A DNA stretch of 63,684 nt, counting the filler, from Octopus bimaculoides (taxonomy: Eukaryota), in the NCBI RefSeq assembly GCF_001194135.2. It is 5 parts of 5 records of this genome, joined end to end, with 100 filler letters (N's around TTAATTAATTAA, not from the genome) between each part and the next. Parts side by side here need not be neighbours in the genome. Positions count along the whole stretch, not along the records: positions 61,465 to 63,684 come from NW_026318897.1; 4 more parts are not named here. One strand, written 5' to 3'. The translations under genes were made by a program, and so were the position numbers. Positions 61,421-63,684 of the stretch are shown here, in pieces; within the stretch, counting starts at the first letter, position 1, and each line of letters begins with the position of its first letter. The notes beneath the pieces are model-generated. The model ran no database searches. It was not told the origin of the DNA and worked only from the letters and a program-made list of their open reading frames with translations.

Positions 61421-61656
61421 NNNNNNNNNNNNNNNNNNNNNNNNNNNNNNNNNNNNNNNNNNNNTAAATTGTAATAATATTGTTCAGCTCATGTAAACAA
61501 TTAATACATTTTTTTAATCGAAAATTCAAAAACCAAAATTCCATAATTAGCATGCATAACAACATCAATACACCAAATTTGAAATCAGCTGTAACAAAAT
61601 TGAAGGAATTGAAAAGTGAAAGCCTAAGAGAAAAAGACCACAAATGTTTTAAAATT

Positions 61657-62475
61657 TTAATAAACGTCTGAATAATCCATAGTGCTCACTTTGTGGTTCC
61701 TTTGAGTGCTGTATCTTGCCTGTGTTGCATGTTTCCTGTGTTCAAGAGAAGCTGATAATAATAACAATTTCATGCGTTCATGAACAACTCGCAAGTCTTC
61801 CTCTTGTCCAGTATACCCTGTCAGATCTGACAAGTCCCGAATCCATGCGTTACAGAAGTGAAAGGCAATTAACCCCGTATAAAGATTAGCTGCCGCAATA
61901 AGACTTGGTCTAAAGTAATTTCTTACGGAGAGAAAGTCATCATATAGCACTAGTTCCGCTAAATAGTTCATGAAATGAAACAAATCGTGACGAGGTTTTA
62001 CTTTGAGAATAACCTGGTAATACGAAATGAAGATATAGGGAGTCATAAAAAACATCCTACCATGAAAACATTCAGCAACCGACATGTGCATCCTATGAAG
62101 CTCCTCCTCTGGAGACTCTGGGTCGACTGCAGCAGTCATAAGAGTAATATTCAAACCCTCATCTGTTGTACGAAGAAATATCGTGTCAAAAGCGACTTTA
62201 AGACATGTTGCTCCAACACATTGCAGTTTTTCGCTTGAAATCGGTGGTGAGTTTCTAGAAGACAGGAATAAGTCAAATAATACAACTGATAGGTGGAGAA
62301 CTTCCAGAGGAGCGTTGAAATTATTTGCGCATGCTATCATCCAGTTAACCACAGCCTTACGATCTTCAGGTTGAAAACTATGGTGACCTTCTCGAAAATA
62401 ATTACGGACTTTCTTTTGCCGTCTTTCCATTTCATGTACAGAGTTTAATCTTCTAGCAACATCTGCAAAATCCAT
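61657..62475 (-). CDS. Divergent single-exon cyclin A/B-fold protein, 272 aa (cyclin N and C boxes, no N-terminal regulatory tail)
   Basis: Uninterrupted ORF aligning end to end with the cyclin A/B core: EME..NY; DRKAVVNW ~ MRAILVDW; EVLHLSVVLFDLFLSS ~ ETLHLAVNYIDRFLSS; KLQCVG ~ KLQLVG; TPYIF ~ TVNQF; YLAELVL ~ FLGELSL; PSLIAAA ~ PSVIAGA; LTGYT ~ KTGYT; ARYSTQRNHKVS ~ EKYKNSKYHGVS. Kozak context ACCATGG; in-frame TAA 6 codons upstream. Confidence 0.88.
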   Translation of the reverse strand: MDFADVARRLNSVHEMERRQKKVRNYFREGHHSFQPEDRKAVVNWMIACANNFNAPLEVLHLSVVLFDLFLSSRNSPPISSEKLQCVGATCLKVAFDTIFLRTTDEGLNITLMTAAVDPESPEEELHRMHMSVAECFHGRMFFMTPYIFISYYQVILKVKPRHDLFHFMNYLAELVLYDDFLSVRNYFRPSLIAAANLYTGLIAFHFCNAWIRDLSDLTGYTGQEEDLRVVHERMKLLLLSASLEHRKHATQARYSTQRNHKVSTMDYSDVY

Positions 62476-62560
62476 GGTCGTTCTTCTGCGAAATTAAACG
62501 TAACTCATTTGTTTAGAAAGTATAGTGTAGTGTCAAGCGACGAAAATCAAAAACATTTCT

Positions 62561-62575
62561 CACGTGATTACGTCA
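62561..62575 (-). promoter_or_regulatory. Adjacent CRE/ATF-like (TGACGTAA) and E-box (CACGTG) motifs about 90-100 bp upstream of the cyclin ATG
   Basis: Minus strand reads TGACGTAATCACGTG; motif match only, function untested. Confidence 0.3.
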
Positions 62576-62874
62576 TTCAAACGTAACAATCAGTAAATGT
62601 CGTTCCAGTTTATTTCAATAATCAAAATCTTCAGTTGTATTTCGATATTAAATTATTTATTGTTCTTTAACATTTGAAGTGTACTAAATTGATTGTTATT
62701 TACAATATCAAAGTTAAGCAATATATAACATTGAAATTATAAAATTGAACATGTGTTACAATTCAGTAACAAAAATAGCATGAAATAATTTAAAATCAAT
62801 TTAATGCCTAAAACTATCATAATAAAATTGCAAGGCATAACATTTATGATACTTGGGCCTATAAAACACACAGA

Positions 62875-63330
62875 TCATAATTCTAACCTATTTGCAAAGG
62901 GTATCATTCTGTATTCTGGAAATGCAATCTGCTGTCGATGCAGAGTGCATCTACGTCTGAGCGATAATCCCGTGGACCCTATGTAGTTTTGGTGGCAGCC
63001 CGAGCATCTTATGACATAAATCAGATTTTCTGAAGCACAAGTACAGTCAGATTTGATTTTGAATTTTTGTCCTTCTTTGAAAAGGAATTCTGATCCTTCT
63101 AGAATGTTTGGGCATGTTGCGCAATTTGGTCGACCACATTTTTTCACTTTTGCATCTGTTATTTTGGAAAATAATTTTGCCTTAGTGAGGATCTTTTTTC
63201 GTGATTTCGGTTGTGATTTTATGTGTGTGTAAAATTTCCTTTAATTTGGGGTCCTTATGTAACATTGGTAAATTTTTGGGGTAGACAAGGGTGTTATTTT
63301 CCTTGATTTCCTGGAACATAGTTGTGCTTT
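62875..63330 (-). pseudogene. Penelope-like element linker plus GIY-YIG endonuclease fragment
   Basis: LHKDPKLKEIL, frameshift, KKILTKAK..KKCGRPNCATCPNI..CTCASENLIYVIRCSGCHQNYIGSTGLSLRRRCTLH. Confidence 0.88.
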
Positions 63331-63479
63331 AAACAGCGAGTGGTATAGTGAGACATTCAGAAATCTTTGAGTAGCAATCACGAGTAAGAAGCCGAATAAG
63401 AATCTGCAAACAATTAACATTCACGATGACAATATGCAGCTCCACACACCTTTAGCGACAAGGCCCCAACTTTCCACCA

Positions 63480-63684
63480 CATCTACATTGAAACTTTGGA
63501 CCAAAACCAGTCAAGCTATCCAGTGGTTCAATTCTCTACGCCCGAAGCACACCTTTGAATATATACAAATCGACATTGATCAATACTACTCCAGCCTATA
63601 CCCTATTCTTCTAAATAAGGCCCTAATTTTCGCCAAAAACATTCCAACTTCCCTTGTGACAATATTGATATATTAGCAGCCCGC
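63480..63684 (+). pseudogene. Penelope-like reverse transcriptase fragment, running off the window
   Basis: LWTKTSQAIQWFNSL..IQIDIDQYYSSL..LLNKALIFAK, frameshift, DNIDILAAR; resembles PLE RT W.NT..VI.WF..FDI.DFYPSI...LL.KAL.FA. Confidence 0.65.

Follow-up and report, generated by a model that had tools for sequence, protein, structure and literature searches.

Near the end of the window, by which we mean the whole 63,684-nucleotide stretch of Octopus bimaculoides DNA analysed here (filler included), the listing of reading frames gives a minus-strand open reading frame (ORF) at 61657–62475 that encodes 272 amino acids and a terminal TAA, with no internal stop. A first-pass annotation had read this ORF as an intact, intronless derivative of cyclin A/B that had lost the residues anchoring cyclin-dependent kinases (CDKs), and had proposed it as a candidate pseudo-cyclin peculiar to its lineage; the 272 codons were found where that annotation had placed them, on the minus strand, which it had not named. 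An identical protein comes from LGKD02024015.1, an unplaced 16.6-kb scaffold of O. bimaculoides assembly GCA_001194135.2. All but its last 5.6 kb was examined, and within these 11 kb the real sequence around the gene amounts to 2,220 bp, with 8.8 kb on one side consisting entirely of N.

Both cyclin folds are recognisable in the protein, as the earlier manual alignment had indicated. Pfam Cyclin_N matches with an E value of 1.4e-13 (51.1 bits against a cutoff of 23) and covers profile positions 4–84 of 127, stopping immediately before the altered region described below, while Cyclin_C matches with an E value of 7.7e-11 (42.5 bits, cutoff 22). No F-box or other domain was found by Pfam in the 272 residues, and no room is left for one. 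The single protein matched cyclin A2 best among solved structures (E 2e-8), and a profile of its family scored the named solved cyclins at 80 bits (A2), 58 (B1), 52 (D1), 39 (F) and 38 (E1). An AlphaFold2 model from a 144-sequence alignment, with a predicted local distance difference test (pLDDT) score of 96.1 and a predicted template-modelling (pTM) score of 0.93, has an N-terminal helix and two five-helix repeats; it supersedes an unusable model (pLDDT 41) obtained from a five-sequence family alignment. Foldseek superimposed the model on cyclins A2 and B1 at template-modelling (TM) scores of 0.81–0.86 and root-mean-square deviations of 2.4–2.9. The features of the cyclin superfamily are present, namely a Cyclin_N box above threshold, two five-helix folds and equivalents of the fold-stabilising residues Arg211–Asp240 and Trp217 of cyclin A2. 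On sequence profile and predicted structure, the ORF is a complete two-lobe cyclin of A/B type, closest to cyclin A2, which agrees with the derivation first proposed.

The gene is no singleton: it belongs to a multigene family comprising a tandem cluster and dispersed copies. In the same assembly, paralogues with 79% (P0002) and 53% (P0005) identity lie 16 kb apart on chromosome CM046604.1, and another copy (P0007) lies on a different chromosome. O. sinensis carries four tandem copies within ~32 kb, in the order C, A2, B, A1, with a further copy (P0156) ~100 kb from the cluster; O. vulgaris has at least three copies, in a gene order conserved with O. sinensis on the same chromosome, and a counterpart of P0156 (P0009). 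Argonauta hians has a family gene (P0008), and there are two further family proteins (P0010 and P0168), whose source contigs, although suggestive of transcripts in their near-identical lengths, are probably genomic, since poly(A) is absent and the promoter element described below lies inside them. The examined members have uninterrupted ORFs of 265–276 codons, apart from one copy of 257 codons and the interrupted A2. In a profile search of 1.84 billion representatives, the six family clusters recovered (E <= 5e-37) are separated by a gap from ordinary cyclins, all of which score E >= 8e-17. That the family is confined to octopod-type genomes supports the lineage-specific reading; on this sequence evidence it appears octopod-restricted, with three Octopus species and Argonauta among its named members, and it has persisted since before the Octopus–Argonauta split. 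Contamination, which had been raised as a possible undoing of the proposal, is excluded by paralogues on chromosome-level assemblies from these species. Database entries call the proteins ‘uncharacterized’ or ‘cyclin-B2-1-like’, and recognition of the family corrects misleading names such as the latter. No description of the family loci, of these database names or of cephalopod cyclin-like families was found in the literature searched, and a prior description elsewhere is possible.

Interface, docking-groove and degron residues

Residues were counted in the same 144-sequence alignment, which holds ten family members and the 134 best-scoring ordinary cyclins. Lys266 of cyclin A2, a lysine in all 134 ordinary cyclins, falls in a gap in all ten family members, and the preceding Ser is gone as well: alignment columns 821–822 read S, A or C and then K (134/134) in ordinary cyclins and are empty in 10/10 family members, the gap in the window protein following Ala95. 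This is the sole core deletion common to the whole family, and a HMMER alignment to cyclin A2 places it identically. The substitution K266>D suggested from the first manual alignment was correct in that the lysine is lost, and incorrect in that the loss is a two-residue deletion; Asp97 stands opposite the lysine only in an ungapped reading. Glu295 (E in 133/134 ordinary cyclins) is replaced throughout the family (H, H, H, Y, Y, R, L, F, Y and Y), with His130 in the window protein as predicted. Phe304, which is F, Y or W in 131 of the 134, is G in the five cluster-subfamily proteins, including the window protein (Gly139), and I, H, Y, F and F in the others, so that its loss is confined to some family members, unlike the changes at Lys266, Glu295, Met210 and Glu220, which extend to all ten.

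The last two of these changes affect the RxL docking groove. Met210 of the MRAIL patch (M in 113/134 ordinary cyclins) is D or N in 10/10 family members, and with Asp38 at this position and Val42 in place of Leu214 the window protein has the DRKAV that had been reported. Glu220 (E, D or Q in 120/134) is A or S in 10/10, and is Ala48 in the window protein; this change and Phe304 to Gly139 add to the losses listed earlier. The equivalents of Arg211, Trp217 and Asp240 (Arg39, Trp45 and Asp68) do not vary among the 144 sequences, and Leu253 and Gln254 (L in 117 and Q in 129 of the 134 ordinary cyclins) are kept in the family as Leu84 and Gln85 of the window protein, so the retention of W217 and Q254 also stands. 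With Trp217, Leu253 and Gln254 retained, the protein may still have a modified RxL docking groove. Beside the deletion, the window protein has a six-residue insertion, EGLNIT, at positions that are gaps in >70% of the 134 ordinary cyclins, and four residues before the deleted lysine it has Lys93 (Lys or Arg in the cluster subfamily), where ordinary cyclins have Leu, Phe or Trp.

The ORF begins at the N-terminal helix of the cyclin core, an in-frame TAA lies seven codons upstream of the ATG and KEN is absent, in keeping with the earlier statement that the N-terminal destruction-box/KEN region is missing. Only two matches to RxxLxxxxN occur, RHDLFHFMN (residues 162–170; 61948–61974) and RPSLIAAAN (residues 189–197; 61867–61893), and both lie within predicted helices of the second cyclin fold and are probably not degrons. 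The features of A/B-type mitotic cyclins that are absent are the N-terminal degron region and an intact MRAIL patch with Glu220.

The Lys–Glu pair hydrogen-bonds to the loop that leads into the PSTAIRE helix, and it is conserved in every CDK–cyclin structure, including complexes of cyclins A, B, E, T and D, a viral cyclin and Pho80 (PMC3590450). A review has proposed that cyclins be defined by this pair (PMC6971155); with the lysine deleted and the glutamate replaced in all ten members, the octopod family falls outside this strict definition. Triple alanine mutation of K266, E295 and F304 is used to abolish CDK binding, and cyclin F, which lacks these residues, binds no CDK (PMC12356897; PMC9699750). 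The loss of CDK-anchoring residues claimed for the single window gene is fixed across the family.

Selection, flanking sequence and gene copies

Most pairwise dN/dS values lie between 0.6 and 1.3 (0.6–1.6 for most pairs in the simple estimates), which would suit a neutral processed pseudogene that is intact by chance, a value near 1 then meaning no constraint. Also favourable to that explanation are the A2 paralogue, which in both O. sinensis and O. vulgaris is prematurely stopped at codon 35, and the setting of an intronless gene beside transposon debris on an unplaced scaffold; because A2 is interrupted in two species, individual copies can die. Several observations argue against neutrality for the family. 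About 4% of random substitutions in family sequences create stops, and simulated neutral paths stayed stop-free with probabilities of 0.093, 0.022 and 0.021 along three disjoint paths (joint probability ~4e-5). The 819-bp coding sequence (CDS) shows no indels when recent or orthologous A-type copies are compared, and other pairs have one terminal gap at most, unlike the ~540 bp flanks, which have 3–7 gap openings in inter-species pairs. Between P0010 and P0168, which also lack the Lys and Glu, omega is 0.19 (likelihood-ratio test (LRT) statistic 66.7, P 3e-16), and their flanks have diverged almost past alignability. Fold-critical residues are invariant, the promoter block and Kozak-like start are conserved, and the family is older than the Octopus–Argonauta split. 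A neutral retro-pseudogene, the outcome that would have undone the first proposal, is rejected by the stop-free probability, the indel pattern, the omega of 0.19 and the site models that follow.

Within the cluster subfamily, amino acid change has been rapid. The window gene differs from P0002 by 69 nonsynonymous and 8 synonymous changes (simple dN/dS 2.5); codon models gave nominally significant omegas of 2.46 for this pair (P 0.011) and 1.89 for the B orthologues (P 0.038), and on outgroup-polarised branches the window gene has 35 nonsynonymous and 4 synonymous changes (35N/4S) and the sister branch 33N/4S. On a six-gene tree, model M2a was strongly preferred to M1a (LRT 37.1, P 9e-9), with classes of omega ~0 (20% of codons), 1 (57%) and 3.7 (23%); the LRT was 37–45 under alternative topologies, and 0/131 data sets simulated under M1a exceeded 7.5. 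Candidate selected sites occur in both lobes (residues 11, 16, 52–56, 100–112, 123, 134, 206–213 and 224–246). Changes between the window gene and its paralogue are enriched in residues 96–140 (16/45 vs 42/227, P 0.016), but hypervariable columns of the whole subfamily are not (P 0.28), so the old CDK interface is not claimed here as the sole target of selection. The CDS diverges two to three times faster than its flanks, a comparison that overstates the excess because the flanks hold a conserved regulatory block, and the codon models were relied on instead. On these models, an overall dN/dS near 1 is a mixture of constrained and positively selected codons rather than neutrality, and the family is kept by selection, with about one-fifth of codons in the tandem-cluster subfamily strongly constrained and about one-quarter positively selected.

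A noncoding block upstream of the ATG is nearly invariant among the A, B and C copies, even though these have diverged by 15–24% in their CDS. It contains a candidate promoter-proximal element, the cAMP-response element (CRE)-like octamer ATGACGTA, within the longer stretch GTTACGTTTGAATGACGTAATCA (Table 1). This octamer occurs within 400 bp upstream in 11/13 copies, against 0.016 expected per such interval, and in three of four deep lineages outside the set that defined it: at -132 in P0007, at -181 and -196 in P0010 and P0168 (L007, L011), and at -298 in Argonauta. P0156 has only the hexamer TGACGT upstream. As judged from these alignments, the protein diversifies while the putative element ATGACGTA stays conserved. 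Directly downstream of the CRE-like element, an E-box (CACGTG) is perfect only in the window copy, other copies having CAAGTG, CAATTG or CAACTG at this position. The description of the gene as intronless holds for the CDS; a 5′ untranslated region (UTR) intron may be present in the cluster genes despite this, as a splice-acceptor-like sequence, TTTAATTTCGCAG, ends 13 nt before the ATG at the same position in all cluster copies.

Table 1. Positions in the window of the cyclin-fold gene, its altered residues and the elements around it
Feature	Position	Strand	Remarks
Cyclin-fold CDS	61657..62475	-	Supported by ORF list, Pfam, AlphaFold2 model and Foldseek; coordinates re-verified
CDS layout			N-terminal helix; cyclin fold 1, ~residues 36–137; cyclin fold 2, ~residues 146–244
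Start codon (ATG)	62473–62475	-	
Stop codon (TAA)	61657–61659	-	
Kozak-like start context ACCATGG and in-frame TAA	62472..62496	-	Conserved in all cluster copies
Altered docking-groove helix alpha1	62332..62364	-	DRKAV for MRAIL, and Ala48; Arg39 and Trp45 kept
Codons Ala95–Phe96	62188..62193	-	Junction of the two-residue deletion, end of helix alpha3
Insertion EGLNIT	62143..62160	-	Residues 106–111; alpha3–alpha4 region
Codon His130	62086..62088	-	Cyclin A2 Glu295 position, helix alpha5
Codon Gly139	62059..62061	-	Cyclin A2 Phe304 position
Region of the splice-acceptor-like sequence TTTAATTTCGCAG	62476–62500	-	
Upstream noncoding block, candidate promoter element	62555..62631	-	-80 to -158 from ATG
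E-box CACGTG	62558–62563	-	
GTTACGTTTGAATGACGTAATCA	62565–62587	-	Within the conserved upstream block
CRE-like octamer ATGACGTA	62569–62576	-	Variant of the cAMP-response element
3′ flank, candidate 3′ UTR	61539..61656	-	93% identical to chromosomal paralogue, ungapped; alignable in all cluster copies
ATTAAA	~61518	-	Further downstream of the 3′ flank
Cys-rich 90-aa ORF	62875–63147	-	
Copy-specific transposon-like insert	62900..63263	.	Homology to other loci ends at 62899 and restarts at 63264
Homologous block beyond the insert	63264–63684		
80-aa ORF	63434–63676	+	

No RNA genes, tRNAs or meaningful repeats were found in the 2,220-base piece. Outside the gene, the insert of ~364 bp splits two blocks that are homologous to other paralogue loci and that stand ~4.9 kb apart in O. 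sinensis. A Cys-rich ORF overlapping the insert matches Pfam GIY-YIG at E 0.0046, below cutoff, and is probably debris of a retroelement bearing that domain. The block beyond the insert has 86–90% identity to sequence ~5.3 kb upstream of A-type copies in O. sinensis and O. vulgaris and so belongs to the ancestral duplication unit; it runs off the end of the real contig and holds an 80-aa ORF with no Pfam match.

Some copies are represented poorly by existing annotation. A2 (L005 22142–22960; L006 13443–14261) has the same stop in O. sinensis and O. vulgaris, otherwise differs by only 3.3% from the intact A1 copy, and is annotated in O. vulgaris as a 191-aa protein (P0006) that bypasses the stop via a spliced 23-codon upstream exon. 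The P0004 model (L005 10001–30206) fuses the start of copy C, its first codons, with the body of copy B over a distance of 20 kb, and the P0156 model (L013 5001–10035) ends in a distant exon, although the genomic ORF runs on uninterrupted for another 22 codons to a total of 268; both models look artefactual from the underlying sequence. The distance between A and B copies is larger in O. bimaculoides (215 differences in 771 nt) than in O. sinensis (147; L001–L005 distance matrix), which suggests either faster evolution in the former or gene conversion among the tandem copies of the latter. The two chromosomal copies of O. bimaculoides (L002 and L003; CM046604.1, 88.108–88.146 Mb) are oppositely oriented, whereas in O. 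sinensis all four run head-to-tail. The CM046604.1 cluster region contains ~15 assembly gaps; the unplaced scaffold may belong in these, and the opposite orientation may be an assembly artefact. No co-duplicated partner gene was recognisable in the 40-kb tandem unit, whose other ORFs lack Pfam domains.

Interpretation and comparison with known systems

We interpret the window gene as a member of a selected, adaptively evolving family of pseudo-cyclins that would be functionally most like cyclin F, and give this reading, drawn from sequence comparison and analogy, a probability of roughly 0.6. With the fold complete, the anchor losses family-wide and neutrality rejected, the candidate pseudo-cyclin of the first-pass annotation has held up as more than a dead relic. 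Its product would no longer form a canonical CDK-activating complex and, lacking a degron region, would probably be constitutively stable, acting most likely as a binding module in the shape of a cyclin, be it an adaptor, a decoy or a competitor, with interaction surfaces that may have been reshaped through evolutionary conflict. Most likely, a cyclin A-like mRNA gave rise to a 5′-truncated retrocopy in an ancestral octopod, and this copy then multiplied by tandem and dispersed duplication. All examined members have an uninterrupted CDS; neither a poly(A) tract nor flanking direct repeats were observed.

A number of points weigh against this interpretation. The pairwise omegas above 1 reach nominal significance only, and for the window copy by itself, with a private branch of ~39 substitutions, staying stop-free by chance has a probability of ~1 in 4. 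The site tests used six sequences and our own implementation, and gene conversion among tandem copies can inflate such tests. The alignment behind the AlphaFold2 model is dominated by ordinary cyclins, so the model cannot show whether the interface is remodelled. Lys93, from its position on the helix, could reach part of the space of Lys266. RINGO/Speedy and p35 activate CDKs without the Lys–Glu anchors (PMC6971155), and on that precedent loss of the canonical anchors is not proof of lost CDK binding. The retrocopy origin is proposed by analogy, as is a conflict-driven and possibly germline role, which the evolutionary pattern suggests. The possibility that the window copy is an allele, considered below, belongs on the same side.

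The main rival is a working cyclin with a non-canonical CDK partner, in which a remodelled alpha3–alpha5 surface would activate a standard CDK or a divergent octopod CDK paralogue, and rapid evolution would reflect co-evolution with the kinase. The whole two-lobe fold is kept, including the N-terminal helix that contacts CDK in cyclin A; residues near the remodelled zone are strictly conserved in the family (DP 118–119, Phe137 and a TDEG motif in the insertion); selected sites 100–112, 123 and 134 lie in the region that faces CDK in cyclin A; and activators without the pair exist, as just noted. Its strongest hint is the Lys or Arg at 93, specific to the cluster subfamily and one helical turn before the deleted lysine. 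Set against these are the absence of all three residues whose alanine substitution abolishes CDK binding (PMC12356897), the failure of cyclin F, the one well-studied natural case without them, to bind a CDK, and the fact that Lys and Glu contact CDK backbone atoms, which side-chain co-evolution of a partner cannot easily compensate (PMC3590450). We regard a working cyclin as rather unlikely, though as a serious contender.

Lower still in probability, and in our judgement quite improbable, is that the window copy and the chromosomal A copy P0002 are one locus, present twice as a highly divergent haplotype or through duplication in the assembly; what looks like positive selection between paralogues would then be diversifying selection acting on alleles. 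The scaffold is unplaced, with little more than 2 kb of real sequence around the gene, and its flanks are 96.5% identical to the chromosomal locus without a gap over 1,361 bp. However, synonymous and flank divergence of 3.5–4.7% would be very high for alleles, the upstream insert differs and the 3′ flank shows a 177-bp difference, O. sinensis likewise carries two A-type copies, and the chromosomal cluster is full of assembly gaps where the scaffold could fit.

An endogenous viral cyclin, or a gene captured by a virus or transposable element, would account for a short, degron-less, intronless cyclin of the kind typical of herpesviruses and giant viruses, with transposon fragments adjoining it, but we consider it very unlikely: the transposon-like insert is specific to the window copy, the other ORFs of the tandem unit carry no Pfam domains and same-chromosome gene order is conserved between O. 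sinensis and O. vulgaris. No relatives of the family were found in 2.9 million viral contigs, the best viral structure match had a TM score of 0.70 against 0.81–0.86 for cyclin A2, and members lie on chromosome-scale octopod assemblies; a viral origin was rejected. The neutral pseudogene, given the selection evidence set out above, is the least credible of the alternatives.

Returning to the pseudo-cyclin reading, tandem amplification combined with rapid protein evolution and a fixed promoter is a pattern typically seen in genes of germline or reproductive conflict. A more specific and doubtful proposal is that the proteins act as an ‘anti-cyclin’, a stable mimic of cyclin A that cannot activate CDKs and that would compete for or sequester cyclin-binding proteins in the octopod germline; Stellate of Drosophila, a tandemly amplified homologue of a kinase regulatory subunit, offers a comparable case. 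Its targets might be CDK inhibitors, substrates or ubiquitin-ligase adaptors, and a genetic conflict such as sperm competition, meiotic drive or a cell-cycle-targeting parasite would lie behind the tandem amplification and recurrent positive selection; if true, this would be the first pseudo-cyclin family shown to have been shaped by an arms race. As small single-exon paralogues, the genes provide a tractable system for what the cyclin fold does without CDK, they could reveal whether pseudo-cyclins are a class of regulators that arises recurrently, as pseudokinases are, and they add a fast-evolving, lineage-restricted family to the genomic novelties of cephalopods.

Compared with cyclins A2 and B1, the octopod family retains two tandem folds with an N-terminal helix, the Arg211–Asp240 pair, Trp217, Leu253, Gln254 and PSLIAA. 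In contrast to them, the window protein lacks the degron region and Lys266, has replaced Glu295, Phe304, Met210 and Glu220 and has gained a six-residue insertion, and the octopod genes are single-exon, occur in tandem copies and are under positive selection. Viral cyclins (gammaherpesvirus K- and v-cyclins and those of giant viruses) resemble the family in their short cores without degron regions and their intronless genes; however, a viral cyclin in complex with CDK6 keeps the Lys–Glu positions (PMC3590450), unlike the octopod family, which is chromosomal and structurally nearer to cellular cyclin A. Atypical cyclins such as CCNG2, CNTD1, CCNO and CCNJ are likewise cyclin-box proteins with unusual or unclear partners, and CCNG2 has been reported as an exception with respect to the Lys–Glu pair, but the pair is present in most of them, the majority have one cyclin box and all are conserved among animals (PMC6971155), whereas the octopod family has two boxes, lacks the pair and is lineage-restricted and fast-evolving. 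Engineered cyclins of the K266A/E295A/F304A type share with the window protein the absence of all three residues, which in the octopod protein is natural; the latter adds a deletion and an insertion and has evolved under selection, so that compensating contacts are possible.

Cyclin F, a natural cyclin fold without the Lys–Glu pair that neither binds nor activates CDKs (PMC12356897, PMC9699750, PMC6971155), is by analogy the best functional precedent for a CDK-independent cyclin fold. It differs in being a large, widely conserved F-box protein whose intact hydrophobic patch recruits substrates to the SKP1–cullin–F-box (SCF) ligase, whereas the octopod proteins consist of the cyclin core alone, lack an F-box and have an altered patch. 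Because the family profile scores cyclin F so far below cyclin A2, the loss of the Lys–Glu pair is taken to be independent of that in cyclin F. Cyclin-fold proteins that do not bind CDKs are already known, cyclin F among them; what is new, as far as sequence comparison can tell, is an octopod-restricted, tandemly amplified and positively selected family of independent origin and without an F-box. If a cyclin is defined by its Lys–Glu pair, as has been proposed, cyclin F is the main known exception, and the octopod family would provide a second, independent case.

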